NCBI GenBank assembly: GCA_977030845.1
Contig: OZ365109.1
Location: 32,984,001 to 33,048,000 of the forward strand
Length of the DNA: 64,000 bases
Reading direction: 5' to 3'
DNA from: Fimbriosthenelais zetlandica
Lineage: Eukaryota
Shown here: in pieces, positions 109 to 55,369 of the stretch
Position numbering within the stretch: position 1 is the stretch's first letter
How the letters are laid out: each line of letters starts with the position of its first letter
Notes under the pieces: generated by a model
What the model saw: only the letters and a program-made list of their open reading frames with translations
Told to the model about the DNA's origin: nothing
Databases searched by the model: none
Program-made: the position numbers and the translations under genes

Positions 109-2481
109 CTTGTATGGGTATTCTTCACTGCCCATAAATATGAGATGTTCTAAAGTGTGGGGCAGACCGTCATCATCATGAGCTTCAGTGGCTGTAATAT
201 AGATATTTATGATTATTAGGCCTACCGTACTACAATAGTTTTCTGCATCTGGTCTCATGGTGATACCGCCGTACTCAATTTAGAATTCCAATCAAGACAG
301 TGGGTGGACTTTTACATGCCTCCCACTAGACACTGGGACACATGGTTGACCTTCTAAATGCCTCCTACCAGACTGTGGAAAACATGGTTAACCTTTTACA
401 TGCCTCCTACTCGACATTGGAAAACATGGTTGACCTTATATGCCTCCCACCAGACAGTGGGAAATATGGTTGACCTTTTACATGCCTCCAACCAGACTGT
501 GGGAAACATGGTTGACCTTTTACATGCCTCCCACCAGACAGTGGGAAATATGGTTGACCTTTTACATGCCTCCCACCAGACAGTGGGAAACATGGTTGAC
601 CTTTTTCATACCTCCCACCAGACTGTGGGAAACATGGTTGACCTTTGCTTTTACATGCCTCCCACCAGACTATGGGAAACATGGTTGACCTTTTACATGC
701 CTCCCACCGGACACTGAAAAACATGGTTGACCTTTTCCCTGCCTCCTACCAGACATTTTAAAACATGGTTGAGTCTGACCTTTCACATGCCTCCCACCAG
801 ACAGTGGGAAATATGGTTGACCTTTTACATGCCGATCCCACCAGAAACTCGGAAACATGGTTGACCTTTTACATGCCTCCCACCAGGCAGTGGGAAACAT
901 GACTGGCCTTTAACTTGACTCAGCTGCATTCTCGAGCATAGTGAGAAACGTGGGTCGTGGCTGGCCTCTATATGTATATATTTTGTATGTAATTAGTCTT
1001 TATAGGTCTACACATCCATGGACTGGCCATATTTTTACCCCTTGACATATATAGCTAACACAAACACGGGGTATAATCTGGGCTAGCCCAGTTTATACCC
1101 CTTGACATATATAGCTAACACAACCAAGGGGTATAATCTGGGCTAGCCCAGTTTATACCCCTTGACATATATAGCTAACACAACCAAGGAGTATAATCTG
1201 GGCTAGCCCATTTCATACCCAATGACATACATGTATCTAGCTAACACAACCAAGGGGTATAAACTGGGCTAGCCCAGTTTATACCCCTTGACATATATAG
1301 CAAACACAACCAAGGGGTATAAACTGGGCTAGCCCAGTTTATACCCCTTGGTATTTTACATATAGAGCACAGACTGATTTGGCTTAACACAGTCTAGATG
1401 ATAATGACTTCAACTTCAATAGGTTAAAGACCAAGAGGAAAGGACGGACAGGACTAACCAAAAAGCTATCGGATATTCTTTTATTTTATGAAAGATATTC
1501 TTTTTCCGATGTCCCTTCTCCCATATTATTATTAAATGATGTGTTCACTGATAGTGTTTGGGGCGTTTTATAATAGTTTAGATTCCTATATTATTTTTGC
1601 AAAATAAAGCAGCCTTCACCCTGGTTTCTTTACAATAAAGATGTGTAAACACGTAGACGTCTTCAGGAAGCCAGGTAATTAACTTAATTTCAAATAAAAA
1701 CCATGAAAACAAACAAACGTGACATTTTTCCCTGTTTTGGCCACAGTTTTCCCTGTTTTAGCCATTGTTTTAAGGGGGGTATATTCTGGGCTGGGGGGGT
1801 ATACTGTAGGCTAGGCTGGAATAGCCCCGGGGTATAATCTGGGCTAGCCTAAATTAACCCCCGGGGTATAAAATGGGCTAGGCTACAGTATACCCGGGTA
1901 TAAAACGGGAGGGGGGTTAAAATGGGCTGTTACACCTGCCAGTACTCAGAGTGGGAATTGATTAATTTTCCTGGTGAAATTATTTAGGCTTGACTTAGGC
2001 CATGGTATATGCTTATGCCTACAGTAGTAGTGACTGTAGTACAGGTAGGGCGTACGGTAGGCCTACCGGTACTAATAAAAGACTTCATTATACATGACTT
2101 TATTGATTAATTTGATACCGGTAGCGGTACCATGTTGCACAACTCGATCTATTCCAACCCTGCACCCCCCAACTACAATCTATAGTCAATACAACAATAG
2201 TAGGCCTACCGGTAGTCGGTACACATAATGACAGATCACATAATGATATGAGCAATACGGGCGGTACCGGTATTCTACAAGTCTGCTATAGGCCTAATAC
2301 TGCTGAATGCCATAAAAATTAATGGCAACTTACCCAAACAAAAATAGCCATTGACGAGTGGGCCCTCGACCTGAGCCAGAACGACGGTCATTCCCGTGTT
2401 GAGAGATTTATATTTGTAGACGGGAATGACAGCGTTCAGCTTACATTCTGTGATCAACTGGAAACCTTCTGAAGCTGCCAT
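109..2481 (-). CDS. M16-family zinc metallopeptidase (C. elegans C05D11.1-like), coding exons 1-2; gene continues beyond the left edge
   Basis: Exon 1 2481-2334 (MAASEGFQLITECKLNAVIPVYKYKSLNTGMTVVLAQVEGPLVNGYFCL, donor G|GTAAGT). Exon 2 191-109 (acceptor TTACAG; ATEAHDDDGLPHTLEHLIFMGSEEYPYK). Phases join (148+83 nt = 77 codons). The inverted zinc motif HxxEH (HTLEH) in the context DDGLPHTLEHL.F.GS..YPYK is typical of this M16 subgroup. Confidence 0.9.
302..905. repeat. About 42-bp minisatellite, about 14 copies (TTTACATGCCTCCCACCAGACAGTGGGAAACATGGTTGACCT), in M16 intron 1
   Basis: Unit read directly. Its 42-bp length explains the repetitive ORFs at 358-717, 396-593, 407-724, 440-688 and 670-900. 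Confidence 0.95.
1033..1350. repeat. 60-bp tandem array, about 5 copies, built of nested palindromes
   Basis: GGCTAGCCCA recurs at 1081, 1141, 1201, 1267 and 1327 (period 60, once 66). Each unit has the arms TTATACCCCTTG/CAAGGGGTATAA and the palindrome CTGGGCTAGCCCAG. Confidence 0.95.
1770..1937. mobile_element. Terminal fragment of a non-autonomous repeat sharing the GGGGTATAATCTGGGCTAGCC motif with the 60-bp array
   Basis: Repeated GGGTATA/GGGCTAG sub-motifs, ending GGGCTGTTACACC. Superfamily not determined. Confidence 0.45.
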
Positions 2482-3106
2482 GATGAGGGATATGTGGATT
2501 ATCGAGACGAATGGCCTCCAGATAGGAGATAGGAGGAATGCTGGAGCAGTAGAGACTCGAGCGACCCCTTGTGAATGCCGGCTGCAACCATACTGGCATC
2601 AATGAGGGGGGCACAATATTTTCTGTTACCGATATAAGTAGGCCTATACTTTTTTTTATATTAATTGATTTTATTGAACACGATCCAAACGTGATCCTGG
2701 GCATATAAAAATAATAAAGCCTACATTTTTATAATCATGATTTTGATTGTGTTCCTGGAAATTTAACCACATAATAATATCACTGTAGATTTCGGCATAG
2801 TTCGGAGTGCCCCCACCACCCTGACTTTTTCAATAATGGCCGCTTACCACCATGAATAACCGTGGTGGGCCTACAGGCTGCAATCTGCTAACATCTCTAA
2901 CTAAGGAACACCTCTAAACAATGAACACTGTTTCACAGTCCCATATTTTGGTTAACACCTAAAACCGACCCCTTAGACCAAGGATAGGCCTACTATCCTT
3001 GCTTAGACTTTGTTGGCACAAACGACAGAACACCGCTCTCCGCGACTGGAGGTAGAGAAAGATGAAATGGACCGCTTACATCAACCAAAACCATCCACGA
3101 GACAAT
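2482..3106. promoter_or_regulatory. Head-to-head, probably bidirectional promoter interval between the M16 peptidase and QSOX
   Basis: Divergent start codons at 2481 (-) and 3107 (+), 625 bp apart. YY1-like AATATGGCGGCC overlaps the QSOX ATG, and AATAATGGCCGC lies near 2832. Confidence 0.6.
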
Positions 3107-6100
3107 ATGGCGGCCGATGTGCATGTCTTACTCTTCCTCGCTCAATTATTTCTTCTTCCTCTGCTCCTCTCGGCGGAGGCTGAACGTGAGCTTTACAGAA
3201 AAGATGACCCTTTATCTATACTTCATGCTGGTAATTTTCATAAAGAGATCATAGGCACTGATCACGCCTGGATGGTGGAATTTTACTCGAGTTGGTGCGG
3301 TCACTGTATTCGCTTTGCACCAAATTGGAGGCAGCTGGCAAAGGAGGTGAAAGGTAGGGACGTGGCCATTCATTCAGCCGGTACTAACATATTGCCATTC
3401 TTTCCTAACATTTACAGGAATATAATAACTATGTTCTGTTTTGAATTTGCTTCGTTTTGTGTTGCAAATTGAAATAGAAAGCTATAGATCTAGACAGTGA
3501 CATTTTCAAAAACTCAAAGCTTCCAACATTGTCATGATTTTTCCCCTTTCAAGTTTTAACTTTAACTTTTAAGGCCTTTCAAATTGTAGTTAGTCCGGCA
3601 TTATTTTGTAGCTTACCGGGACCTGAAAAAGTTCTTGGGTGAAAGTAATGTTTGAATGCTCAGTCCGTGGTAGGCCCCTATTTGTTTATAGCTGAAATTA
3701 AGAATAAAAATAGTTTATTCTCTTCACATGAATTAACTTTAGTTTTATTTCTAGCCTGGAGCCCGGTGTTTCGGTTAGCTGTAGTTGATTGTGCACAAGA
3801 AGAGAATCTTGAACTTTGTCGGGACTACAACGTCGAGTCATATCCTACGTTAAAAGTGAGTCAAATATTGATAAGATTCCCATGTTCTGTCCACTTTGTA
3901 ATACTTCTACATCTCCTGATTAAAGATAGATACCGGTACCGTAAACCAAAAAAAATTTCCTTTGGTTATAAAATGAAAATTTTGTGTGGAGCAATAATCG
4001 TTATCAGTACCGGTAATAATATTCTCATGATAGACTCATATAAAGAAGAAAGATTAAGCGTTGGATTGAGGTCTGCTTTGCGTTTCCAAATGTTTTTGTT
4101 TTTTTAGTATAAATTTAGTTGACATAAAATGCCATGTTTGTTAACAGTGGATTGATGCGTACACCAAGGAGGGAGACAAAGGAGTAGCCTATGAGGGTGA
4201 CCGGGAAACAGTAGATTTAAAACACGCTATAATCGATCATCTCCAGAACCTCACAGGTTCACCTTCAGCACCAAGACTTCTACCTAAATTATCACCATTA
4301 AGGTACTCAAATAAAACGTCCACATTAAAATTAACCCCCACGGTCCATCCCACAAAAACCCAGATTGCATTAAGATTGCTTCCCGATAGTAATCCCGATT
4401 TGAAAGTTACCAATTGGAAATACATATACATGTAACTCTATTAAGCAGACAAAAAACTGGTCCTACTCACAAAATGACATATATTGTCAAAATGTCCCTG
4501 CTGTTTCAGTTGGATTTGTGTACCTGGTATGCTAAAATGAAGCTTTCTTCCACTGTAGATCTCTAGAAGATATATGGAATGATGTGACAGCGTCCACCCG
4601 ATTCACTGTAGTTTTCTTTGAGGAAGGTTCAAGCTACACTGGTCGAGAGGTGAGATGATCCAGCTCTTATTTTTTCTTAATTGTCACATAATTTCATCTG
4701 TTGTGTGAGACAATGAAGCGGCTCTCTAACCGATCTTTTATTGTTCTGACCTTCCTCTGTAAAACCATGAATGATTTCCTGATTCCTTGGACCGATTGAG
4801 AATAAAATGTTCCACCTTCCTCGGAGTGAAACCTATTAAATCTATATTTTTAATCTGATGACCATTTTAAACATTGAGGGCTTTATATAATCACGTGAGC
4901 ACACGCATCATCCGATCTTAAAGCGAGCCGGTCGCAGAATCTGGCAAGAATAATGTACATTTATTCCAAATATGTTTTGGCCTGATTCAACTGTTTTAAG
5001 TGCTCAACCGGTTCATTTTGTAAACACTGATAATCTATTTAATTTAATCATAATATCTGAAAAACTGGACCGTATAAAATCTGGCAAGAATAATGTATTC
5101 CAATTTTCCAAATATGTTCTGGCCAGATTCAACTGTCCTAAGTGCTCACCCGGTCCATGGGATTTTGTAAACACTGATTTTCAATTTATTAAATTAAGCA
5201 TAATATCTGAAAAACTGGACCGAATAAACACATAAAAACCTAAATGTTTGCACTTGAAAACCCTTTAACAACGTATAGTTTCTTTTTTTTAACCCTATTT
5301 AAAAACCTATACCGGTACATGTATTTAGGAGGGATGGCACTCTGAGATCTGCCATCGGGACTCATACTATTCTCTAATTATCATTCAAACATTAACACTG
5401 ACCTTCACTTTCTTAGGTCATTCTCGACTTCGCCTCTCGGACTGATCTCGTTCTGCGACGTATGACCAAGGAGCATATCGCCAAGTTTGGCATCAAGTCC
5501 TTCCCCTCCCTCTTCCTCATCAAAAAACTCGGTACATTTGACAAAATTGCCATGTAAGTTCAAAGATTCGAGAGATATTTATTCACCAAAAATATTTAAG
5601 ATTAGATAATTCGTCCTATATGGGTTTAGTTCAAAAAGTCTATTCTGAAAATAACGCCAGAAGTTGAAAGACCTATTGTCACTTTTTAATAACTTTCAAA
5701 TTCCTCCTTCCAAATTAACTTGTTCTGGATGTGTAACATTATTCATTCCGCTCGAACAAGCACGAACATGACCGTCGTTCTGGCTCAAAATGTAATGGCA
5801 CAGAAAGTGGTGTCAGATGTGCTTGTGCAGTTTTTAATGCTGAGTCCTGATTGATAGTATTTTTAATTAAACTTCACGGGTATTCCATTGTGTATTATGT
5901 AATAAATTCAGTGTATTTTGGGGTCATGCATACATAGCCTACATTAGGAACTATGGCCAGTTGGAATGCAAGTGCAATGCGGTCAAAACACTTGTTCATT
6001 TTATTCAATATCTACTAAATGATAAGCATTTAAATGTGCTACATGAATGGGGCCCTGTAAGGTTTTACTGGCGGGGTTGGATAATTCATCGGGGGCCACA

Positions 6101-11359: not shown

Positions 11360-13346
11360 TCATATTCCAGTTTCATGATTTGATACTTTATTTACACAAT
11401 GGCCACACAACATGAGCTTCAGTTCCTGTCTGAAGAGGGAGCCACTTATGCCATAGAGAAGAAACCATGATAGGCATTGGTGAAGAGAATGAAACCAAAA
11501 CTGTTGACACCTAACATGATATGGATGCCCTTGTTGTCCAGTACAGTATAGCCAAGCTTCTTCCTCCTCCTTCTGAAAAGTGTAATAAACAAGGTAGTAT
11601 TTGATATCAAGATAATGATGGAAGGAACCACTGCGTATATGACAGCATGAACTTCAGGTAGTGGATAGGTGTCACCAGGTTTGGGGTCCAGTATAGTAGC
11701 ATGTACTAGCAATATATATATACTTTTTTTGTACTTGCCCTGGGTTGCCTGTGAGAAAGTATGCATTTATAAGTGATAGTTGAGTTAGAAGGAGGGAAGT
11801 CATATTATGTGTAAGTAGGGAATTGAGTAGGCGTAAGTTTGTAGACTACAGGCACCCTTAGTAAGGGCCTTACTGCTGCTTTCATGTTGTGTAGTTATTG
11901 GGGTGACAACGTGATAAATGTGTGTTTGTGCGTGCAGTGCACACCCGATTATGAAGGTGAAGAAAACATTACATATGCTGTCCTCTGTACGGTCTGCCAC
12001 TTCCGTTGCGCCTATGGCTACACTCCAGGGCAGACCTTAATTGTTGTTTGGTAGGGAATGAGTAGGCCTACCATAAGGTACAATGATATGCTACAGCTAT
12101 GCTATGACTGTCGATTTGTCATCCTCTTCATTGTGGTCCTGGCAGGGACAGAGACACTGAGACACAGACATACTTTGAATGTGGGCCTGTAGTGGTAGGA
12201 AACACGGTCGATAAGGGGGGGGGGAGGGAAGGACAGACAGACAGAGCAAGTGGGGAAGACAGAGCAAGTGGGAGAGACGCAGATGTAGTGTGTGTGTGAG
12301 GGAGAGTAAGGACCAAGGCAGATGTAAACACAAGCAGGCAGGCGAGCGATAATATAAGGAAAACCAATGCCGGTGCCAGCAGAGAATGTAGAGAGGAGAG
12401 AGACAGAGAGAGACAGCCGGAGAGGGAGATGGTTAGAATATTGTTAAGAATATTCTGAAAATCCTAGAAAAGAAGTGTAGCCTACCTACCCTGTTCAAGG
12501 GTGGTGCAAGAGCATAGCCATATGTAGACTGTAGTATAGGTCATAGCTGTTGTGTGAAGAACAATAACAATGAGTGATCACGTGCATTCATTCTGATGGC
12601 TGATTGGCTGGCAGGGGTTTTTTCAAGTTTTCACCCTTTATTGGACGGAAATAACATATCAATGCCTGGGAATTATGACGTAGAATTACTTCATGTATAA
12701 GTCACACGTTGTGAAAAGACCTTTTCTGTTGACAAAAAGAAAGGCGAGGTGGTGTTTACTGCGTTATGGGAAGATGCGGATGACAATGAGTAGGGGGCGC
12801 TGTAGTCACCTTATAGAAATAGCTACTGTGTAGCTTCTTCGACGCTACAATAGATGGCGCCGCCTCGTCCAGAATCAGGGCCGTGACAGTAGCCAAAGCT
12901 GATGCCACTATGATACAAACCCCAATGAAGAAAGTCTTTCTTTTGATGAAAATAATTTTAACGTACAAAGGTGAGAGAACTGAAATAAGTCTTTCCCAAC
13001 TGAGCAAAACAATCATCCAAGCACTGGAAGTAGTGAATACTAGAATGAGCCATGTTCCCACGTAGTTTAGCCTGCCTTCTTCAATTGTCTTTGGGTCAGG
13101 AGCAACGGTATATGAATGATATAGTGAAATGATATTATACACTATAAGTATCAGGTTATCCAGAACAGCCAACATGCGCAATGATACAGAATAACTTTGT
13201 TTCGAGAACACATCCCGGCTGAAGACAAAGTAGGACAGGGTGTTTCCAATGATGCCCAACACCGAACAACCGATTCTTGTCGATTCAGTCCATGTGAGGG
13301 CGAATTCCTCTACGTCAGTAGAATTGACTCCCTCAGTAAAATTCAT
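11360..13346 (-). pseudogene. Disrupted paralog of the class A GPCR at 19599-20492
   Basis: ATG at 13346; near-identical to the intact copy through VTALILD. Interrupted by a 1175-bp insertion (11692-12866). The TM6-TM7 segment (95 nt in copy B) is replaced by 7 nt (CCATGAT), causing a frameshift and a stop at 11446. Confidence 0.9.
11692..12866. mobile_element. 1175-bp insertion of unknown class with 6-bp TSD GTCCAG
   Basis: GTCCAG at 11686-11691 and 12867-12872. The intact paralog has a single GTCCAG (GGGGTCCAGAATC). No TIRs, no TG..CA ends, no protein-like ORF. Confidence 0.85.
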
Positions 13347-13924
13347 GATCAACTTTGGTAGTTGCCTTGAAACAATCACTTTTAAACATAAATGATTGCC
13401 CTTCGCTAATCCTATTTCAAATTGCAATGCCCCATGCAGATAGCCTAGCTCTTGTTCCGTATGATTATTGTGGATAATAATATGTACCATTCTTTAGGTT
13501 CCTGTTCATGCCTGCTTCTAAGTTCAACTTATGAAATGTATATCAATTCTGATATCCGAATTCTAATTTAAATCTTGTTCTTTTGTATTATGTACATCCT
13601 ATTACAGTGACAAAATAACAAAAATCCCCAAAGTGAATTGTTATTTTACACATGTACATTCCTATCTAATAGCATATGGAAGTTCAAATGATTTAAACTT
13701 AACCCTGATATGCATATCAGGGTTATCTACCCAATTTACTATTAGCACGGAGAAAAACCATAATTTCTAGGTCCTCATTTGTTTCTTTGATTATTTTCAT
13801 TGCATAATTAAAAAATAATTTTAATTATTATCGGTTTTTCAAAGAGACTCAGTTTTCCAAAAAGGTTCAAGTTTCTCAAAGAGTCTTTGTTGCTTCTCCA
13901 TACTAATAAATAGATTGTAAAAGA

Positions 13925-14160: not shown

Positions 14161-14708
14161 GAGGGAATGTTCAGCCTTTGCAAAAGTACCCGTTTCCTGA
14201 TAGAACCCTAGCCTCATCTTGAACATTACTATTGGCTCTGCTCTAGCTGAGCTGACACATCGAAGGCTTCCCACTCGCAAACGCTAATAGTAATACCCCA
14301 ATCACAGTGAGTTAGAATCAGCAGGAATCAAGCAGAACTAAAATTCCTGCTACAATTGAGAAGGCCTTTTAAAAAGACAAAAATTTGCAATGCAAGTCTA
14401 CCTAAAAAGACATCACACTAGAGTAGGAATGAGCCAGAATGGCCTCTCAATGAAGGTTCTTTCTATATTCCTGGATATTCAAATTGCATTTTACAGATTC
14501 CAACTGCATTCTGATGGATTCCAAATGGATTCTGAATGTTTCGACCAATTCCTGGGGCCATTTGGAAAGTTTTGGTCATGTTCAAAACTTTCCAACTGCA
14601 TTCTTACGGCAGAAATATCGAACTGCATTCGAAATAATTCTAAATGCACTCTGAAACACACCTGGAATGATTCTTCCACCTTCTAGAATCCAGGCTGGAA
14701 TTCCCTAA

Positions 14709-16606
14709 TGCCTAGTTTACACTTGGTCACTTTGGCCACGTTCTCCACGTTTGTTTGAAACGTACTGGAACCGGGAAATCTTCCTTATTTGTGAATTCAG
14801 AATATTTTCTTTTACCGTTTGATTAGGTTGTGTTGGGATCTCTGAGGGTGATCGGATCAGATCAACTGTAAGAATCGGGTTCCTGAGTCCAGGTGACTCA
14901 AGAACCATAAAGGTTAGATCAGGATGCCAAAATGTTTTGTCCAGTTCCTGCAAGATGCTACCAGTTCCCTCACATTAGTCAATTTTTGTTAAAGTTCCCC
15001 CAAGTTTCTCAAGTCATAATAAGATATAACAAGGCTTCCAATAGATGAACGTGGGAAAAACAGGGCTCAGGGCAAGTTTTGAACACGTTTGGACCGCGTT
15101 TAAAAGGTCGGATATAAAAAGGATGCAGGACAAACACTTCTCATGATACATTTACACTTGTCCACGTTGTCCACGTTACGCATGTTTGCTTGAAACGGGG
15201 TCAAAACGTAGTAAAGTTAAGAGAACCTTAGGCGACGTGATGGGACTGGTAGGGGTAATGTGATATACCTTGAACGCCTGGATGAACGTGAAATTTTTTT
15301 TGCCTGGCAAAAATTTTGCCACGATCGCCACGTTTGAAAATGAATTTCTTGGGATTTGTTAGAACGGGTTGAATGTGACAGAACCGATTAGAGTGTAACA
15401 GGACTTAACAAAACTTCTTTGCTTCCCTAGCGGAACTTGAAACACTGACATTGGAGGTTCTGCTAGCGGCTTGAAAAAGTATGATGATACAAATAAAATA
15501 AAGTACGTAATATTACAAAGGTAGACATGTTGTGTCTGACAAAAATTGTTAATCAAAGACATAATTCAGTCTGGGCCAGGTCAGTATTTGGTGAGGTGAA
15601 TACGCGAGGAATTAAGGGGGGATGGGGAGAGGGATCACCTTGTGCTAGAGAAATATTCAGCATAATTTCCGACAACAAATTTTAATTTTGTCAATTTATT
15701 ATTTGTCTTCACCTTTCATACACATAAAGAATTATTTGCATTTTTAAGCGATATCTAAAGTGAAATCGATTTTAAATACTTTGTTTATAGTATTGTTATG
15801 AGATTATCATTTTACAAATTATTTAATATTAGATATAGGAAACGTAGCCATCTGAGTTATACATGTAGAAGGATGTGGTCTAAATTGGTAGGAAAAGTAA
15901 GAGTTATATAAGACCTAAAATGCGTATAATTGACAAGAATATCACAATTAGTTTCGATGTACATGTTTGGATGTAAAAATCAACCCATTATAAAAAATTA
16001 ATATGATTTCTCCCCACCTCTACCCCAACCCCCCTACCCCTCCTAATCAAATGTTTCCAGTTCCACTAAACAAGCCACCAAAGTTTTCTGAAGTCGTGTT
16101 AGGTTATTTTAAGTTCTGTCACGTTCAAAATGGAATGAAACGTGACTGCCGTGAAGGCCTTATATGGTCCCTCTCAGACCCTGGGAGATGACTAAAACTA
16201 TTACAGCGTGACAGACCGGCAAGCACACCATATCAAACCTTGATAGGCCCTGGCAGAAAGCCAGATCAACGTTGGGACCTTGCTAATAATGTACCCAAAC
16301 TTGGTAGAACTTGGAATCAAATGTTTCCAGTTCCACTAAACAAGCCCCAAAGTTTTCTGAAGTTGTGTTAGGTTATTTTAAGTTCTGTCACATTTAAACC
16401 GTTCTATTAAGGCCTATACTCGCTTTCTTGTTTCAAACGGGAAGATCGTGGCCACATTTTTGACATTCAAACATTTGTCAAAAGCAGCTCTGCACATCAA
16501 GGTCTGTCAGGTTATCCCTTCCCTTCCCCTCAAGTTCCCTCAAATTCATCCCGTTTCAGACAAACGTGAACAACGTGGCCAACGGGCCCTTAGTGTAAAC
16601 CAGGCA
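14709..16606. mobile_element. Nested 1.9-kb Harbinger-like non-autonomous element
   Basis: Imperfect about 45-bp TIRs TGCCTAGTTTACACTTGG..GGCCACGTTCTCCACGTTTG / CAAACGTGAACAACGTGGCC..AGTGTAAACCAGGCA. Recurrent CCACGTT motifs. Internal about 80-bp direct repeat at about 16048 and 16317. Flanks are TAA and TTA, so the TSD is imperfect. Confidence 0.7.
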
Positions 16607-17147
16607 TTAGAATGCAGTAAGAATGTTTAGAATGCACTTAAAATGTCATACAAGTCTGGCTTGATAGCTGCTCGAGTCCCACCTGATGTCTGGTTCGAAG
16701 GAGCCTCAGATGATGCCACCTAGAAGCGAGGGAGAATGCTCCTGGAATATTGTTTGATCATCCAAGAATTATAACCGAATGCAGCTCGACTATCAACAGT
16801 TTAAGTTACTGAAAGCAGTCAATTTATGTTATTGTATCCAAATTTCACCCAAATCTGATCAGAGTTAAGAGAAAATTGTGCTTTTGCTACTTGCAATGTT
16901 TATGAACATTGTTACAGCTTTGGTTTTAGAAAAAACTTATATTTCTAGATACATTTGTTGGTAATCTCAGCTTGCTCTTGTATTCACATGTTTTATTGAG
17001 ATCTTTTACACAATTCGTTCAAGCCCATCTTTTCACCTTAAAACGAAAAATCAAAAAAGACACCCTGCAATAAATTCACCACCATTTATTTTGGGGTGGA
17101 AAGAAAAACATATCGTAAAATAGTAATTTTATTGACATTTTTAATTA

Positions 17148-18018
17148 GAATAGAGGCAATTCCAGATAGCATAAATCGACGGCCGCGCTATGATGCGGTT
17201 AAGTGTGAACTATTTCCAGGAGTCATACCTACTTCCGGTATGGGTATTGGCCCATAGGGAGTTAACGGTGAGAAAATGGTGTTCATTTGTCAGCCGGCAG
17301 AATGCCGCTCAGATTCAAGGAAAAGTCTTTCTACATATCCCTTTATGAAAGGGGTAACTTGGGTCAAGTTTCCAAGGGGAAGTACTCCCATAAATAGGTG
17401 GAAAAGGCTGCTGAGGAGGGCAGATAAAATGAGCTTATTTCGGTGCTCATGGGTATGTTCTCGCCATTTTGATAGTGAGAACATTGATAGAAAAGGATAT
17501 TCCTCAACTGACCCGAAATATTTTGCATGGAACAATTGGGGAAAGACTGAGAATCCGCGCAAAACATCATCCTGTGATGAATTAGATTGTGGACATAAGA
17601 ACTCCTTCATTTCATTGTGTGAAAGTAATGATGTTCAGGTGGGCGACAATGAGGAGGTAGCCATGTTGTTTACACCCGAATCAACATCACAAGTTTCTAA
17701 ATCATCATACATGTACATTCAACTTTTTGCAAGAGATCAACCATATCTCTTTAAATTTGCGCGTGCTGGTGGCTGGTATGCCATTCTTTTTCAGTTTGTC
17801 TTTCAATAAATTTACACTGATTTCCTGTATTTCTAAAATGTTGTTTACATCGGTTACCTCGCACTGACGACCCGCCTACTACCAGATATCCCAGAATGCA
17901 CTCGGGCCGGAAGAGCATACAACTCCATTTCTGTCTCTGTGGTGGCCCGCAGTTGCGCCATTTGGCGGGTAGCGGAAAGTGGAGGAACTAAAATTGCTAT
18001 CTGGAATTGCCTCTATTC
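17148..18018 (+). mobile_element. 871-bp TIR element carrying a THAP-domain ORF
   Basis: Perfect 24-bp inverted repeat GAATAGAGGCAATTCCAGATAGCA (17148-17171) / TGCTATCTGGAATTGCCTCTATTC (17995-18018). No TSD found. Confidence 0.85.
17276..17809 (+). CDS. THAP (C2CH zinc finger) domain ORF, 177 aa, without a transposase catalytic domain
   Basis: MVFICQPAEC...KFP...RW...WVCSRHF matches the THAP signature C-x4-C...FP...W...CSxHF. ETS-like ACTTCCGG and CCAAT-like ATTGG just upstream. The part after about residue 130 may be non-coding. Confidence 0.75.
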   Translation: MVFICQPAECRSDSRKSLSTYPFMKGVTWVKFPRGSTPINRWKRLLRRADKMSLFRCSWVCSRHFDSENIDRKGYSSTDPKYFAWNNWGKTENPRKTSSCDELDCGHKNSFISLCESNDVQVGDNEEVAMLFTPESTSQVSKSSYMYIQLFARDQPYLFKFARAGGWYAILFQFVFQ

Positions 18019-19598: not shown

Positions 19599-20492
19599 TC
19601 ATATTCCACTTTCATGATTTGACACTTTATTTACACAACGGCCACACAGCATGAGCTTCAATTCCTGTCTGAAGAGGGAGCCACTTATGCCATAGAGAAG
19701 AAAATTAATTATATGATTGAGCCCTGTGAAGAGGAGCAACAGGCTCCTAGCGTTAAGGTCTATCTGTTCTTTGTTCATGGTCAGTTCATATAGTGGGAAG
19801 GCATTGGTGAAGAGAATGAAACCAAAACTGTTGACACCTAACATGATATGGATGCCCCTGTTGTCCAGTACAGTATTGCCAAGCTTCTTCCTCGTCCTTC
19901 TGATGAGTGTAATAACCATGGTAGCATTTAATATCAAGATAATGATGGAAGGAACCACTGCGTATATGACAGCATGAACTTCAGGTAGTGGATAGCTGTC
20001 ACCAGGTTTGGGGTCCAGAATCAGGGCCGTGACAGTAGCCAAAGCTGATGCCACTATGATACAAACCCCAATGAAGAAAGTCTTTCTTTTGGTGAAAATA
20101 ATTTTAACGTATAAAGGTAAGAGAACTGAAATAAGTCTTTCCCAACTGAGCAAAACAATCATCCAAGCACTGGAAGTAGTGAATACTAGAATGAGCCATG
20201 TTCCCACGTAGTTTAGCCTGCCTTCTTCAACTGTCTTTGGGTCAGGAGCAACGGTATATGAATGATATAGTGAGATGATATTATACACTATAAGTATCAG
20301 GTTATCCAGAACAGCCAACATGCGCAATGATACAGAATAACTTTGTTTCGAGAACACATCCCGGCTGAAGACAAAGTAGGACAGGGTGTTTCCAATGATG
20401 CCCAACACCGAACAACCGATTCTTGTCGATTCAGTCCATGTGAGGGCAAATTCCTCTATGTCAGTAGAATTGACTCCCTCGGTAAAATTCAT
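19599..20492 (-). CDS. Intronless class A (rhodopsin-like) peptide-receptor-like GPCR, 297 aa from MNFTEG
   Basis: N-terminal N-glycosylation sequons (NFT, NST). TM1 GIIGN, TM2 LAVLD, TM3 SWERL (E/DRY variant), TM5 VVPSIIILILN, TM7 NFLLY followed by FRQEL. The ORF extends 66 codons further upstream (to 20690), but ATG 20492 fits the receptor N-terminus. Confidence 0.9.
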   Translation of the reverse strand: MNFTEGVNSTDIEEFALTWTESTRIGCSVLGIIGNTLSYFVFSRDVFSKQSYSVSLRMLAVLDNLILIVYNIISLYHSYTVAPDPKTVEEGRLNYVGTWLILVFTTSSAWMIVLLSWERLISVLLPLYVKIIFTKRKTFFIGVCIIVASALATVTALILDPKPGDSYPLPEVHAVIYAVVPSIIILILNATMVITLIRRTRKKLGNTVLDNRGIHIMLGVNSFGFILFTNAFPLYELTMNKEQIDLNARSLLLLFTGLNHIINFLLYGISGSLFRQELKLMLCGRCVNKVSNHESGI

Positions 20493-22167
20493 GATCAACT
20501 TTGGTAGTTGCCTTGAAAAAATCACGTTTGAACATAAATGATTGCCCTTCGCTAATCCTATTTCAAATTGCAATGCCCCATGCAGATAGCTCTTGTTCCG
20601 TAAGATTATTGGGGATAATAATATGTACCGTTCTTTAGGTTCCTGTTCCTGCTTCCAAGTTCCACTTGTGAAATGTATCAATTCCGACATCCGAATTCTG
20701 ATTTAAATCTTGTTCTTTGGTATTATGTAAATCCTATTACAGTGGTGACAAAATTACAGAAATTCCCAAAAGATTTGGCGTCATGACCAATAATGTGCTA
20801 TAATTGTTAGTTTGCATATGTATGCACTAATTCCTATCCATGACTAGCTCATATGGCAGTTCAAATGATGTAAATTATTAACTTAACCCTGATATGTGAT
20901 CTATACCCTAATTTACTATTAGCACGGAGGAACAAATCATTACTTGGTCTTTAATTGTGTATTTGATTATTTCCATTGCATAATGATTAGCCTTTTGCCC
21001 TATATTTGAGGTACAATAGCAGGTTCAGTTTCCCACAGAGATTCAGTTTTCCAACATGGTTCAAGTTTCTCAAAGACCTTTGTTGCTTCTCCATACTAAT
21101 AAAGAGCTTGTAAAAGGCCAGCCATGTCCCCACTGTTTGTGGTTTAATAGAGGCATACAAAAGGGCAGCCTTGTCTCCCAATGTCTGTGCTTAGAAGTTA
21201 TAGCCTCATCTTGAAAATCCTAGATCCGTCAGTGACATTATAGTTATATTTGACGATTCATACTATTGGCTCTGCTCTAGTTGTGCTGACACACCTGTTA
21301 TTTTTGTCTGTCCTCTCCACTGTTAATATTCACGACTCTCAAAAACTGCAATCTGTCACATATTAGTAACTATTGGGATATTTCTAGACCTGTTAGTAAC
21401 TGTTGGGATTATTTTGACCATTATACAACCTGCCTTTTGTATCTTTGTTAATACTGCCCAGTTCCATTCCTGGCTCCCCAAAACTCATATTAGCTTTGCT
21501 TTTCATAATCCATGTGTAAAATATATATACATATATTATTATAGGCAAATAGTATATTATGGCAAATATTATAGGCATAATGGATTTTCACCAGGATCAT
21601 ATTATCCTGCAGGGTCCTGTTTCGTAACCATAGGTTACAGCATTGTTATGAAATAACTTCCTGGATCATATTATGGATATTATGTCCTTCATATTGGAAT
21701 ACAAAATAGATTTGTTGATTCCAGAATGTTCCAAGGTCATTAATTTTATGGCATAGAATTTAATGGCATATTATTTTTTTTACAAAGACGAGCCTTAAAA
21801 ATATCCACTGGGGACTACAGTCCCAGAATTATTCACGTCTATCGATAATACAAACTGCACAATTTTATATAGGCCGTTACCATGGTAAATATTTCCATGG
21901 AAGGCAAGAATATAATAATATGCAAACAAATTCTTGGTCTTATTATAAAGACACTTTTCACCAGAAATGAGCTCATTCCGGCAGTAATTTATTTCTGTTG
22001 CGCCCAATAAATTCTAGTAAATGTTCTGTTTTGAGGTCATTTTGATGATTCAACCTTGAAATGACCTTGAAACATTCTATTTTTGATTCCAAGATGAAGG
22101 ACATACAAATCCAGTAAGCCGGTAAGAAAAAAAAACCGGTCTCTGTTTCTTACAATGGTTTCTGACA

Positions 22168-25990: not shown

Positions 25991-28900
25991 ATGTGTGAAA
26001 TTTATTTAATTATGAACAACCACCATAATTTTGTCTAGTGACAAAATAGCCTAAAGTTGATATCATTGATTTGTGGGATAGGCCTACTACAAAGATTTCT
26101 CTTGGGAGGATTACATGTCAGCCTAGATGAAAATGAGGGAGGAGGAAAGAGGCAGAATGGAGGAGGGAGGATGACAGAGGGAGAATGGAGAAGGGAAAAG
26201 GAAAGAGGGAGAATGGGAATAGTACATGCTTAGGTAAGTTTCGACGAGCCAGTTTCCAGCCAGCGACCCGAAAGTCTTCTGTTTCAAATTATTGCACCAC
26301 CAGATGAGGTGCATACTACATTGCAATGGATAAAAAATTACAGCCTGCAATTAAAGTTTTGAAACAGGATGATAGGCCTACCACAACGACCTCTGCACTT
26401 TAGCCCTCTTCTCCACACACTATTATAGGCCTATTCATTTCTTCGGTATCTTTCTGCAGAAGACAAAAGGATGGATGGAGCATGCAAGACTGACTAAGGC
26501 GACACCGACGAATAGTGGTAGTAAGTAACCAATGACATTATCCATCTAGCCAGGACGCACAAGTCATTCAATACCGACTTTTTTCTCGGTTTCATTTATA
26601 GCATCTTGAAAGATTTCCATGTATCTGGCGATGGGTGGAGATCAGTATTTTAATTTATGTACACAGACAAATCTTACGTTTGAAAATAATGATTTTATTT
26701 CTTTCGATGTAATTGATTTGTTCACAGAACACATGGAAAAGTCAGCAATAACTGAGACGAGCTTAAGCATGTACATGGGTCGGGTGATAATGTCCACTGC
26801 ATGACCCTACTTCTATACACAATGACACAAGTGATTACTTCATCTCACAAAAAACTGCAATTGATTGAAGTATATCGATTTATACTGTACAACAGTGACT
26901 GAACACGAGAGCCTATAGATTTATATACGTAGGCCTATATAGATAAAGATACATACCGGTAGGGTAGGGCGTAAAACTGTACAGGCTGCATTAAATACAG
27001 CAAATATTTCATATATTACAGAATAAAGGCATTACCGGTACGGTTAGGTGTGATTAATGCTAGATATATTATATACATCCAATTGTAGGTGAAGGGCCTC
27101 CTAAAAAAAGAATAGGTACACAAACCCGTCTGGGAATATAGAATTCATTTTCACGTAAGGTGAGCCAATTCCTTCATCTTTAAGGCAATAAACTTTCTCT
27201 ATAGTAGATACACTTGCATTAGTACAATTAAATTATTTTCATATATCAATGTAGAAAATTAGTTTGCTATCTATTGTTTTTGCAACAGCTTAATGGTGTT
27301 TCTTTTAATGATTTAACCTTGAGTGTAGATATATAAGTTGATGTAGGTGAAGTAGTAGTACATGTACTCTATGTTATATAAGAGGATACACTGGAATGGA
27401 AACATAGCTCAAGTGACATTATCAACGGACAACAACGAATGTCCAAAGTTTGTAGTTTCCTTTGACTCAGCAATATTTTAACAAATCCGATTAATTTTGC
27501 TGCAAAATGTGTTTCTTTCTGCTCTTTTGAGAGTGGAAAAATATTTAAGAAACACCAAGTGTTTACAGCCACAAAAGTGGGACATTATATGTGTCTCTCA
27601 CCCTCATATACACCGATACTGGCCTGGAGATATTTACAAGCAGCTCTAGAAGGGTAAAAACCTACCCTCCGCTTTGTAACATGTTTTAGGCAATAACAAT
27701 TAAGTATTTCTTCCTCTATAATCTTCTTACACCTGCAGGTATTTTGCCTGGCATTTCAAAACAAATATATAGAGCATGGGAAATACTAGTGCAGAGCCTG
27801 ATATAGCTATTAACTGTTTCATTCTCAATCGAAGATAGTCTTTGGATCAAGAGAAGATCAATTCTTCAGCCTTTCTTTTGCATTTAAGATCACATGTATC
27901 TGGTTTCCATTATAATCAGCCTAATTCTGCATTTAGTCTAGGGCAATCTACCACAAAAATGTGAAAAAGAAATGTCATTTTGTAAAGGAAACCACTATGA
28001 TTGAAAATAGTAAACTTCACATTAACTGTACATCTTGATTGTCTTTCTTTCATAAAGATGCTGCCTTATCCATCACTTTTACAAGTCAACAACTGAAAAA
28101 GTGTCCAGAAAATAGTGAGCATAAGATTAGATAAAGAATATCAAGAGCAATTAAATATATTCAAGTGACCTTTTTCGAATTTTGCCTTTTCCTGTATACA
28201 CTCTTCTAAAGCTACAAATATATAGGGTATACATCATCTTTATATATAGATATATAATCATATTTATGTACATCGTTCATATACACCGGGATTGTATGTG
28301 TCCATTTTATATATACAATAAATGCAATACTCTATACAGAGCTCCTACAACTTATTCCATTTTAATATTAAAATTCTAAAGCTTGAATAAAACTATGCTT
28401 CTCCCATCCAACGGAAGCCTCGCTCCAATGGACTGCAAAATTCTAAGAACTACTGATGATCATTAAAATTGCAAAATACAGGTAGTTCCGGGAACATCTG
28501 TATGACAGAGATATTATATATAAAGCCCATCTATTGCAATAGAACTAATCATGATTTGTATAATTTAGAATTTTCTCTGTGCAAAAGGGTTTACGGTAAT
28601 TTAGTTTAACGCTATTGTTGATATAACACAACGAAACTAAAATATATAACAAATAATGAAAGCTTCTATTAAAAATGTCCCTTCAGGTTCTAAATTTTAA
28701 TTATAAGGATAAAAAGCACTGGTATAATTATAGAGGGACATATAAAATATATAACATGTAGAGCACCTTTAAGAGAGAGCAAGCACAACAAGGTAAAGAC
28801 ATGTTGTTAACCTAACCAGAATTATAAATATTGAATAATTATTGAAATTCTCTCTTTGCTAAAGTTCGTACTTTATAGCATGGGAGAATTATGTGCTTTC

Positions 28901-52234: not shown

Positions 52235-52834
52235 CTGAAACACAAACACAAACTATATAATAACTGGTATAAGAAGAAACGAGGATGGGTCCTCTAGGTC
52301 CAAAGATTAAAAAAAAAACCTTTTTCATTGACCTATATAATTATAATAGATCATACCACTAGGTTTTAGAAGCACAGCTTATTTTAGACAATATGATCGG
52401 CTCCTTACCCCGGCCTGCTGGGACACACACAGGGATGGATATTTTTATGATATCTAAGCTTATTTGGCCTTATGGTGATAAGCTTTTATTTGCCAATATA
52501 GGCCTAACTTATATTCTTGGTGCCATTTAGGACTTTTGAATGTGCCAGAGGCATTCGAAATATTTCCATTACCAGGGAGGATTACAAGATAGCCTACCTA
52601 CAAATTACTTATACCGAAATGACCATAAATTATAGGGCCTACATTTATTTATTTTAACAATTTACCTAGGAATATTTAAAATGATGGAAACAGTGTCTAA
52701 GTGATAAATCTGCAAAATCTAAGCAGATATTCCTGTCATTCAGTCAATGATACATTGTAAATGTGGTCATCTAATGTTATTAAAGCCCATGCATAGCAGA
52801 TGACTTTTTTTCCCTATATGACTTCAAACATAAA

Positions 52835-52925
52835 CAACACGTGACGTCTGTGTTGTCATAGTTAACGAGGTCACATACGAACCACGTGACCGAGGAATCC
52901 AAAGATGGCCCCAAACAATGGGAAG
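52835..52925. promoter_or_regulatory. Promoter-like motif cluster 600 bp upstream of BAH-gene exon 52234
   Basis: CACGTGACGTC (E-box plus CRE), a second CACGTGAC, and YY1-like AAGATGGC within about 90 bp. Confidence 0.4.
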
Positions 52926-55369
52926 GGCAGGGCGGGATCAAGAGGGGTCAGGTGAGGGCAGTGAAGGTCGCACAGCATGGGGGAGCGTTGACAGTTACTG
53001 ATCAATGGTAAAGAATGCATGGGGGACCGTGACGAATCCATCCCAGAGATGAAGGGTAGAGAGTTTATTGTGGATGGGGAGATAAAAAGAAGAGCTGCCA
53101 GAACGGAGATAGAACATAGTCAGAGACAAGGGAGGATAAAGGACAGTAGATAGTCACCAATAGGGAAGACAATGGGGACAGGACTCTAACTTAAGGCAAA
53201 GACAATGGACAGATGGGGGACAGATATGGGGGACAATGGATGTTTCGGACAGAAAGGGGAAGAGAACAGAAGAGTAGGCATAGGTCTAAAAGGAGAGCAA
53301 ATCAAGAGCATATGTGGAGGATGAGGAAAGGGAGTTCAAGAGAATCGGTGTCATTTTAATTAATTCATAGCTTGCATTCCTTTATTATAGGCTAACATTT
53401 CCTCAAAAGGGAATCAAGACTGAGAAATAGGCCTACAATAAGACAGAAGGGGTGTAGATTTATGTGTAGACAGAGAGGTTTCCCTCATTTTGCTTGGACC
53501 GCTGCCTGCAACAGACGTGCCCCACTTATTATACGTGCTCTGATTTATATCACATTCATTTTGTCTGCCAGTCACGAGGGAAAAGAAAGCATCTTTGAGG
53601 TTTTAGCGACATGGACCACTTCCAGACTTCTTTTTTGGACGACTACTTTGAATATGTCCGCTCTAAAATCAATGAGCAATCCAGAAAACTATGAATATTA
53701 ATTCACTTTTTTATGTAAATCTGGTGAGGCACGTGGTAGGTCTTATAGAGAAGAAAATGTCGATAGGTCAAAGTGAGAAACAACCGAATCCCTTGTCCCA
53801 ATAGTCTACGTAGGATTGCACTGATGAATCGTGCTAATCACTAAATAACCGAAAATATCTCGAGGAAATGGAATATGGATTGTTAGTTGATTATTGAAAT
53901 ACATCAATTCATAAGCTGTCAGCACCCGTTTGCCCAAAGAATATTGATATAATTGCCAATTATAATCTAACCAATATGATGTAGGCCTATCATAATCTTT
54001 ATACCGGTATTACAAGTACATGTATACACAAATGGACCCATGTCAGGTTCTGGAATTTCCCAGCTCACACATGCAACTGTTCTCATTTCAGGTTTGTTTA
54101 TGAGTTTTCTGATAACATCTTCCAACCTTAAACCCAATATAGGCTACGAACCGGAAGCTGGCTGCCGTAAAAGAAATCGGCTATCACAGTAGCATGCGAG
54201 AAGTAGTTCCAGAAGCGTTTTTGGGGTTCCTACTGACCCGCTTCCCTCTGAGTGGTATGTGATAAAAGGGGTTTTCTTCAGGGTATCTCAAGGACCCGCA
54301 TGAGGCTGCAGATCGGCAGAGTCTGTACTACTCCAGTAGGCTTATTGAATGTGAACTCAAGGTCTTTGGGTGCATTCTTCTGAACACTGTGACGTCACAA
54401 CCAGCATAAGAGAAAGCCAGTTTAGCTTTAAATAATGCAGAACGCAATATATTACACCCGTAAAAAAAGGCACCAGGAAGTAGGCCTATAGCAAAGCCAA
54501 CCCATATATTATAAGGCCTGTGGTATACATGACATGATGGTTTTTGTCCCAAAGATATCAACTGAATATTTATGTAGGCCTTGGCCTGTGACATTCCTAA
54601 AATGAGAATGATGGAAATCAACTGATAGAATATCTCACTACTTTGTAGTCCTACCGACAATTAGGCTGACAATTATGCCTATAGTTGTTGGACAGACATC
54701 TTTGCAATTGGAGTCAAAAAAAGAGGCCTATAAAGAATAAAGCCTACGTAGAATAGCACAAACAATATAAATGAATTTTATTCAAAAGCTCAAATTATGT
54801 ATTAGGCCTAATAATCCAATTACCTGCGAATTGATAATGTTAACATTACAAGTAGGAGGCTTAACTCGGATTTGCATAAAATGAAATAACAGGTTAACAT
54901 TAGTCTAAGTAGGCACAATAGGCCTCGTATGCATATTGCTTTAATCTGTTTCCGATTTATAGGTCACATTCCTCGTTGTGAAATGAGGTAAGACCAACAT
55001 CCATTGGTAGCCCAGGCAAGGGTTAGTTGGCCGTGCATGCCAGGCAGGAGGGGTTTGTGGGGGAAGAGAAGAGAGGTGGGAGGAGAGGCGGGGAGAGGAA
55101 GCCAAGCAGCAAGAGCATCAGCATCAGCAACATCAGCAGGGCTTCCAACTCTAGCACTGCCTCCAAGTCCAAACAAGACCCGATGCCAAACACACGTTCT
55201 AACCACCTATTTATCAAAACCCCTCCCCTAAAACTTCCCTCTCCCATATGACAACAATTTTTCACCAAATATCCCAATACCATTTCCCACCTCTCATCGG
55301 TTTCTGTGTGAATCTCCCGATCTATTTTGTGAAAAATTGGAATTTCATTTGCACGGTAGCCGGGCATGG

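Follow-up and report, generated by a model that had tools for sequence, protein, structure and literature searches.

Octamers and octamer fields in the window

The window, which is the whole stretch of 64,000 nucleotides analysed here, contains many copies of three palindromic octamers, TAGGCCTA, TACATGTA, and TACCGGTA, in which a GGCC, CATG, or CCGG core, respectively, stands between two TA dinucleotides (positions are those of the window; strand is given where one was assigned). TAGGCCTA is the top 8-mer, with 23 copies observed against 0.75-1.03 expected, followed by TACCGGTA (11 against 0.36-0.48) and TACATGTA (11 against 1.3-1.8), and 23 of the 181 GGCC tetramers are flanked as TA..TA. 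Most of the octamers sit in non-repetitive flanks, and the examples named in an earlier note made from the sequence (217, 2058, 2064, 2201, 2207, 17708, and 54481) are all correctly placed. Their distribution is clustered, with a variance-to-mean ratio of 3.5-4.0 in 2-kb bins. The densest field (2058..2992), surrounded by single-copy DNA (1960-4120), contains TAGGCCTA at 2058, 2201, 2289, 2639, and 2985 and TACCGGTA at 2064, 2116, 2207, and 2265, including two fused TAGGCCTACCGGTA. A second field (26079..27040) has four TAGGCCTA and two TACCGGTA inside 1 kb, and a third (52499..54810) has six TAGGCCTA, one TACCGGTA, and one TACATGTA. Chains are also found outside the fields: at 217..224, TAGGCCTA is followed by CCGTA, a 5-nt partial unit of the CCGG type, and at 5310..5323, TACCGGTACATGTA forms a mixed chain with one common TA.

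Clustered palindromes of this kind might be protein-binding sites that selection has kept or multiplied near genes. Homeodomains of the Iroquois type prefer TACATGTA as their site, and in Phytophthora promoters this palindrome is abundant; it lies upstream of 12,070 Phytophthora genes and has been named as an Irx site (PMC3520976). In the window, the gene start beside the densest field is unsupported, as the candidate exon there has no Pfam match, and the link between octamers and CpG-rich DNA is not significant (p about 0.08). Binding sites also fit poorly with the fresh 5-6-nt insertions described below in a satellite unit, a transposon copy, and a coding region (one of them a frameshift), and with the TA-sharing chains, partial 5-nt forms, and large halo of decayed copies, so that selection on binding sites is regarded as quite improbable.

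The tandem array and its 66-bp unit

A tandem array of 5.2 units (1021..1350), with a period of 60 bp by TRF, belongs to a dispersed repeat of foldback-like structure and makes up the inner portion of one of its arms. The terminal segment of this element (280 bp, 1657..1938, plus strand), ending in ...GGGCTGTTACACCTG, recurs with 96% identity as the inverted ends of 4-8 kb copies. The array units at 1081, 1141, and 1267 read TTGACATATATAGCTAAC, whereas that at 1201-1266, with a length of 66 bp, reads ATGACATACATGTATCTAGCTAAC and differs by six extra bases and five linked substitutions. As the earlier note had observed, this unit is exactly 6 nt longer than its neighbours and carries TACATGTA in place of TA: the octamer (1228..1235) lies where the sister units have a TA (GACA-TA-CATGTA-TCTAGC versus GACA-TA-TATAGC), and aligning the 60-bp and 66-bp forms always costs +6 nt plus one substitution. 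The further suggestion that an excision had taken place in this single copy had to be abandoned, since eight other loci (L026-L033) contain 14 examples of the 66-bp variant, together with its linked substitutions. The octamer at 1228 was inherited as part of a variant repeat unit and is not the product of an excision at its own locus, and the recurrence of the unit points to one old event that was multiplied with the 4-8 kb foldback-like repeat.

Length gains at TA between paralogues

The change from a single ancestral TA to two TAs around extra bases was seen in four paralogue comparisons, as the earlier note had predicted. Besides the repeat-unit comparison at 1228 (+6, CATGTA), these include L064 compared with six sister copies (+6, giving TACATGTA), L010 compared with L009 (+6, giving TACCGGTA), and an insertion of 5 nt (TAGCC, 13441..13445) at a TA, giving TAGCCTA, compared with a paralogue near 20.59 kb. 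This last case, a partial GGCC type, frameshifts a GPCR-like copy. The events at L064, L010, and 13441 are independent of one another and of the event at 1228, and the four represent about 4 of the 14 distinct clean 5-6-nt insertions in the loci compared. A substitution is found within 2 nt of the insertion in three of the four, the case at 13441 being clean; such substitutions are not predicted by a simple excision model. Another palindrome-creating insertion was seen at 13700.

Some of these words could be produced in TA-rich DNA by ordinary substitution or slippage, either from TATATATA, which is two transitions away from TACATGTA, or by unit slippage giving TAGGCCTAGGCCTA. TATATATA is common (16 copies in the window), and the reversed word ATGTACAT is itself 2-3-fold enriched. 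TA runs hold two of the 14 clean insertions, several more are simple tandem duplications, and when the first 100 sites of TAGGCCTA were inspected, about 9 proved to be 6-bp doublets. Neither GGCC nor CCGG can arise from TA in this way, however, and slippage cannot yield mixed chains. The documented cases are length gains and not substitutions, and the non-repetitive setting of most octamers likewise speaks against slippage, which is considered very improbable.

Abundance, product spectrum, and decay

Across the 447-Mb assembly, TAGGCCTA occurs 113,146 times and its reversed word, used as a control, 2,970 times; the corresponding numbers are 71,537 for TACATGTA and 34,027 for ATGTACAT, and TACCGGTA occurs 18,503 times, with many copies within satellites. 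Among palindromic TA-NNNN-TA words of the window whose core contains G or C, only those with GGCC, CCGG, and CATG exceed expectation and the others are at expectation. All three cores are palindromic, and the enrichment of non-palindromic cores is not comparable. The excess is well above chance and confined to these three words, which are far commoner than other palindromic 8-mers. In a full-text literature search for TAGGCCTA, the 20 top-ranked of 283 matches had no relation to the phenomenon.

Chains with a common TA are frequent throughout the genome, with 3,292 words of the TAGGCCTAC[CG/AT]GTA type compared to 2 in the control, and mixed chains reach ~3-10 times the number expected if hits fell independently and uniformly on the TA sites, of which there are roughly 31.7 million. 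Such TA-sharing chains are what serial TA-targeted events predict. Super-dense fields lie at C1:9,070,494-9,085,615, C1:3,024,702-3,027,544, and C1:6,102,082-6,105,038. The product itself is uniform, since TAGG-N0-CCTA was counted 42 times versus 0-3 times for spacers N1-N8. Partial and longer forms of an end-joining spectrum are present. Enrichment of the partial forms is only 2-3-fold, with about 3-fold for TAGGCTA and TAGCCTA (5 nt), and the 10-mers TAGGSSCCTA (TAGGGGCCTA, TAGGCCCCTA) occupy 2,558 sites versus 749 in the control, or some 2% of the number for the 8-mer. No enrichment is shown by TAGGTA and TACCTA (4 nt), and the Sleeping Beauty-type 7-mers TACAGTA and TACTGTA are only about 1.7-2-fold enriched. 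One-mismatch neighbours number 208,241 against about 100-145 thousand expected, so that copies decayed by one letter are about as numerous as intact ones, which indicates that the process is old or long-lasting. The presence of octamers in unique DNA, satellites, transposon copies, and one gene copy further indicates that this process is mutational.

Search for possible parent elements

If the octamers derive from mobile elements, then elements with matching termini might still reside in the genome, as the earlier note had anticipated. This was borne out for the CA..TG core: a resident Tc1-like family with the ends TA-CAGTTG...CAACTG-TA duplicates TA and fits this core, and the family is low-copy and diverged (68-73% identity). 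Searches of the window and of 182 kb of other loci, together with genome-wide pattern trials, turned up no TA-flanked element for the other two cores, with either GG..CC or CC..GG ends. Genes for transposases of the Tc1, pogo, and mariner types are few, with 21, 47, and 0 matches, respectively. A MITE scan of the window identified TIR elements at 14705, 17148, 21681, 22168, 23696, 25301, and 37846, none of which begins with GGCC, CCGG, or CATG. The sole clearly recent TA-duplicating family in the window is represented by a young 1.9-kb TIR element (14706..16609, plus strand), which lies between TA duplicated inside CTAG, has the ends ATGCCTRGTTTACAC, and is present in at least 37 copies with 96-99% identity. 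Its AT..AT ends are unlike the three cores, and the family shows that TA-duplicating elements are active in this genome.

Several candidate parents were considered and rejected. The pair formed by TA-GGCCTACCGTAC and GTACGGTAGGCC-TA at 217/2065 is based on a 14-mer that occurs as 236 dispersed singletons and not as pairs, and it reads as a scar chain; the interval starting with TA-GGCTGATTGTAAT and closing with TA at 23327/27923 is not repetitive, and that between the TA-CCGGTACTRATAA pair at 2064/4015 is single-copy. ISL2EU duplicates AT, not TA (PMC4482050). Short palindromic remnants of the form TAGGCC..GGCCTA are 5.6-fold enriched, yet they have no common arm beyond GGCC. The recurrent TAGGCCACG... 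cases lie inside dispersed repeats and have conserved upstream flanks, and L002, L003, and L006, with DDE_3-like ORFs and a weak GG..CC inverted pair, have flanks other than TA.

The parent element, still missing after many trials, could mean that fixed palindromic hexamers are written at TA by a mutational process other than excision, for example by an enzyme (a nuclease of the host, or a transposase that has been domesticated) which cuts TA and appends fixed bases during repair, or through the integration of very short end-to-end products. The unusual uniformity of the product would agree with such a process, as would the very dense fields (10 events within 2 kb where the DNA is unique; at C1:9.07 Mb, about 45 within 15 kb) and the capacity of this genome for other palindrome-creating insertions, of which 13700 is an example. 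On the other hand, the three discrete cores suit three families with inverted ends, and we know of no repair pathway that adds constant untemplated GGCC, CCGG, or CATG. By our estimate, the observed numbers would be reached if about one scar formed in every few hundred gametes for as long as an 8-mer lasts, and a few active, now lost copies would suffice. Such non-excision writing is judged unlikely.

Proposed origin of the octamers

The best reading of the octamers, with a probability of roughly 0.6, is that they are excision scars of cut-and-paste DNA transposons, the ~100,000 genome copies of a few palindromic words being most likely the traces of departed elements. An element would insert at TA and duplicate it and, on leaving, both TAs and a few terminal bases would remain; given inverted-repeat ends, the outcome is TA, a palindromic 4-mer, and TA, with a net gain of 6 bases. 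The earlier note had put forward scars of TA-targeting elements with three kinds of ends, and this proposal is partly supported, by the gains at TA, the excess, the chains, and the CA..TG match, and lacks its GG..CC and CC..GG elements. Their absence from the searches above, the small number of Tc1-, pogo-, and mariner-type transposases, the low copy number and divergence of the Tc1-like family, the AT..AT ends of the one clearly recent TA-duplicating family, and the rarity of the full TACATGTA form among Tc1 footprints in C. elegans count against excision. At least three end types may have acted in the lineage, with GGCC dominant and CATG and CCGG beside it. Each scar recreates two TA targets, so that later events would build chains such as TAGGCCTACCGGTA, and a regional concentration of scarring would give rise to the fields. 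The scar at 1228 would be old, having arisen in a 60-bp array unit before it was multiplied with its host repeat. The breaks would have been made by a transposase, and the uniform 6-nt product may mean that 2+2 bases were retained, which is the Tc1 pattern, or that the cut had a 4-nt stagger, which is the Minos pattern. With GGCC, CCGG, or CATG ends, a 4-nt stagger would leave self-complementary overhangs that ligate cleanly.

A more specific and rather unlikely proposal is that TAGGCCTA stems from a so far undescribed cut-and-paste group, possibly PIF/Harbinger-like (PHIS), which would combine GGCC ends, TA duplication, and 4-nt-stagger excision, its self-complementary GGCC overhangs resealing like restriction fragments. 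If true, it would account for a product of such extreme uniformity and for a record on the 10^5 scale, and the fields would mark chromatin accessible in the germline over tens of millions of generations.

Should the octamers be excision scars in general, the genome would hold an unusually legible record of cut-and-paste traffic, in which three or more families would have left over 10^5 scars that are still intact and about as many that have decayed. This would provide a direct tally of insertion-excision cycles, which are normally traceless in repeat annotation, and would allow estimates of transposition rates, of the targets and the chromatin preferred in the germline, and of the mutational load of excision, exemplified by the +5 scar that frameshifts the GPCR-like copy. 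It would also point to an element of high activity, either overlooked by ordinary annotation or since lost. Restriction-based genotyping has to reckon with a strong bias in the sites of StuI (AGGCCT) and AgeI (ACCGGT) in this genome.

Comparison with known systems

The proposed scars resemble those of Caenorhabditis elegans Tc1/Tc3 in the duplicated TA, in the two terminal bases kept from each inverted end, and in the identical TACATGTA product, and a Tc1-like family with CAGT ends resides in the present genome. TAGGCCTA would require GG..CC ends and, to our knowledge, the ends of Tc1/mariner elements are not of this kind. Footprints of Tc1/mariner elements keep 2-4 nt from the start or the end of the element (PMC6943129). 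Among the known footprints of Tc1 is TACATGTA (PMC3520976, citing Eide and Anderson 1988). The full TACATGTA form is described as a rare Tc1 footprint in C. elegans (PMC3520976), whereas the full form dominates here, with 71,537 copies.

As with Minos and Sleeping Beauty, the proposed scar would be a uniform end-joining product consisting of TA and 2-4 terminal bases. The canonical footprint of Sleeping Beauty is TAC(A/T)GTA. The ends of Minos, studied by Arca et al. in 1997, are reportedly not self-complementary and give two alternative scars; unlike this, every core in the present genome is a perfect 4-nt palindrome. The net gain of 6 equals the Minos product, a footprint of 6 bp (PMC10992017).

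Harbinger-type genes (DDE_Tnp_4) are very numerous and often intact, with 150 matches scored out of 478 candidates, and the copies examined are all internal to their elements. The TIRs of PIF/Harbinger (PHIS) elements classically start with GGCC or GGGCC. PHIS elements prefer AT-rich targets, and their target cut varies by subgroup (PMC4482050). The known groups duplicate TWA, AT, ANT, CWG, TNA, or nothing, and none duplicates TA (PMC4482050). A PHIS origin of the GGCC scars is, at present, a lead and not a result. Scars of the P-element type, short palindromes in a 7-8-bp duplication, are likewise fossil excision scars, and they differ from the octamers in their longer retained ends, a 7-bp duplication, and the absence of a TA rule.

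Octamer frequency and arrangement

The excess of TA-NNNN-TA octamers is real and narrow. In the window, TAGGCCTA (core GGCC) is the most frequent of all 8-mers, with 23 copies against 0.75–1.03 expected, and TA stands on both flanks of 23 of the 181 GGCC tetramers, while TACCGGTA (CCGG) and TACATGTA (CATG) occur 11 times each against 0.36–0.48 and 1.3–1.8 expected, respectively. The octamer positions listed in the earlier note were all correct, and these words outnumber other palindromic 8-mers, as its reading requires, the remaining palindromic TA-NNNN-TA words with G/C in the core showing no excess over expectation in the window. Genome-wide, TAGGCCTA is found 113,146 times and its reversed word 2,970 times, TACATGTA 71,537 and 34,027 times, and TACCGGTA 18,503 times (many within 20- and 40-bp satellites) against 14,334 for a reversed word that lacks the CpG and is a poor control. 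Reversed TACATGTA, i.e. ATGTACAT, is itself 2–3-fold above expectation (10 copies in the window), one part of this being due to TACATGTACAT overlaps.

The product is strikingly uniform. In 121 kb of non-redundant sequence, TAGG and CCTA adjoin directly 42 times and are separated by each spacing from 1 to 8 nt only 0–3 times; enrichment was about 3-fold for the 5-nt TAGGCTA and TAGCCTA and absent for the 4-nt TAGGTA and TACCTA. TAGG-SS-CCTA 10-mers number 2,558 genome-wide against 749 in the control, and 46 of 50 sampled were TAGGGGCCTA or TAGGCCCCTA. The dominance of the unspaced form, with few shorter or longer ones, puts uniformity above 95%.

The octamers also form chains. At 3,292 genomic sites, compared with 2 for the control, TAGGCCTA is joined to CCGGTA or CATGTA through a common TA; in the sample taken, the CCGG and CATG types each made up about half. 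Triple chains are also present. With independent, uniform hits on ~31.7 million TA sites (TA frequency 0.071), ~130 CCGG-type and ~510 CATG-type fusions would be expected, so that the observed numbers are ~10-fold and ~3-fold higher. This surplus fits the regional clustering of the octamers, as 2-kb bins have a variance-to-mean ratio of 3.5–4.0 and positions 2–4 kb of the window hold 10 of its 34 GGCC and CCGG words. Chains sharing a TA are a prediction of serial TA-targeted events, and are poorly explained either by slippage or by selection for a binding site. The densest field seen comprised ~45 irregularly spaced TAGGCCTA copies within 15 kb (G000:C1:9,070,494-9,085,615); also on C1, a long tandem array (31,834,885-32,050,248; period ~3.1–5.4 kb, >55 copies in 215 kb) has a unit that includes TAGGCCACGAAAAATTACAT.

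Allowing up to one mismatch, TAGGCCTA occurs 321,387 times genome-wide, with exactly one change in 208,241 cases. A Markov model scaled up from the window predicts 134–145 thousand such one-mismatch words, or ~100–110 thousand after reversed-word calibration, leaving a surplus of 60–100 thousand decayed copies, comparable in magnitude to the intact set. Octamer formation is thus old or long-lasting, and the description of the octamers as a fossil record is a fair one. By a rough estimate, these counts would be reached if about one scar formed in every few hundred gametes for as long as an 8-mer survives; a small number of active copies that were later lost would have been enough.

Gain of octamers at ancestral TA sites

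All paralogous sequence in the data set was compared, and only insertions with well-matching flanks were retained. Among ~14 distinct clean 5–6-nt insertions, four duplicate TA and carry the three cores (CATG, GGCC and CCGG, one being partial), as anticipated if the octamers arise by insertion at an ancestral TA; the others are tandem duplications or length changes of homopolymer or TA runs. The four are a +6 insertion with a CATG core at window position 1228 (66-bp versus 60-bp unit), ACTCATATAT to ACTCGTACATGTATAT in the Harbinger-type element copy L064 relative to six of its sisters, AAAAGGTATA to AAAAGTTACCGGTATA in locus L010 relative to L009, and CAGATAGCTC to CAGATAGCCTAGCTC at 13441, a +5 partial GGCC form. 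In three of the four, a substitution lies within 2 bases of the insertion, which may reflect repair noise or chance given 6–15% divergence.

The 13441 insertion (TAGCC) distinguishes two GPCR-like (Srx-like) paralogues (12756-13490 and 19599-20690; 85.5% identity over 1.2 kb); it interrupts RNKS|YLHG in the first and shifts the frame, so that the N-terminal reading frame of the 12756-13490 copy is lost. Nearby, a perfect 22-bp palindrome, ACCCTGATATGCATATCAGGGT, flanked by TA on either side (13700-13725), corresponds to a site near 20.9 kb where the paralogue lacks 8 nt, and therefore resembles a snap-back (templated) insertion; judged from this comparison, it looks like a second, distinct type of palindrome-making mutation in the genome.

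The insertion at 1228 lies in the second of two satellite arrays at the window start (1021-1350, 60-bp period), whose units at 1081, 1141 and 1267 carry CCCCTTGACATATATAGCTAACAC, whereas the 66-bp unit at 1201-1266 carries CCCAATGACATACATGTATCTAGCTAACAC. Every alignment of the two forms requires six extra bases and one substitution, one possibility being GACA-TA-[CATGTA]-TCTAGC against GACA-TA-TATAGC. The array is part of a repeat that has >1,000 genome matches (window 1021-1938 and loci L036-L045; 2.9–7.8 kb in these ten fetched copies), which is termed foldback-like on account of its 280-bp inverted ends, finishing in CAGGTGTAACAGCCC (one such end being 1657-1938), and of 60-bp arrays oppositely oriented on its two arms in the ten copies. 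Its right ends vary (CACCTG or CACCGGC). A set of 328 oriented 60-bp units was excised from the retrieved loci. In it, the 66-bp form that carries TACATGTA and five linked substitutions recurs 14 times, at eight loci distributed over two further chromosome-scale contigs, and this indicates a single +6 event in an ancestral unit, later multiplied with the host repeat. The 1228 insertion was inherited rather than formed locally: of the excision footprint proposed for 1201-1266, the gain of six bases at TA stands, yet it is uninformative on excision at that locus. In another variant of 66 bp, GACATA-ATTATA-TATAGC, the core is not a palindrome, and the change resembles slippage.

Elements with matching ends

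Pfam searches of the genome gave 21 matches to DDE_3 (Tc1 type), 47 to DDE_1 (pogo type), zero to Transposase_1 (mariner type) and, among 478 DDE_Tnp_4 (Harbinger type) candidates, 150 scored matches, many with open frames. Several DDE_Tnp_4 families are 99% identical between chromosomes with frames open, which suggests current activity. The earlier note assigned the octamers to elements with CA..TG, GG..CC and CC..GG ends. The first has a matching family, namely L001, a Tc1-like element of 1.69 kb whose inverted repeats span 277 bp and whose ends read TA|CAGTTGTGCCC, and ~30 relatives (68–73% identity) with the same ends. Neither scanning 182 kb for TA-anchored TIRs nor scanning the window for TIRs in general revealed elements with GG..CC or CC..GG ends, and genome-wide pattern trials for longer remnants yielded no element. 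Three specific candidates were examined and none is a parent element; ISL2EU is rejected as a source, its target duplication being AT rather than TA (PMC4482050).

A 1.9-kb non-coding TIR element (14706-16609) duplicates TA within CTAG and ends in ATGCCTRGTTTACAC. Its family comprises at least 37 near-full copies on several chromosomes at 96–99% identity, is very young and was therefore recently active, although its ends are AT..AT, unlike those sought. An 871-bp element at 17148-18018 has 24-bp inverted ends, GAATAGAGGCAATTCCAGAT, and contains an ORF of 177 aa (17276-17809) that includes a THAP domain.

Possible mechanism and known systems

Tc1/mariner transposases cut the non-transferred strand 2–4 nt within the element, and end joining leaves TA, retained terminal bases and TA (PMC6943129). 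TACATGTA is a recognised Tc1 footprint according to PMC3520976, and the Minos footprint is 6 bp (PMC10992017). The octamers could retain two bases from each element end. Alternatively, we infer that a 4-nt stagger may act on ends reading GGCC, CCGG or CATG, leaving self-complementary overhangs that would be ligated without processing and would explain the uniform product. Both readings fit the data.

The common footprints of Tc1 would equal the 4-nt forms, which are unenriched in this genome. PIF/Harbinger elements typically have GGCC ends. TA duplication occurs in none of the known PHIS groups (PMC4482050). A possible likeness to PIF/Harbinger would lie in such ends, which would match the main scar core, and in the abundance of Harbinger-type transposase genes in this genome.
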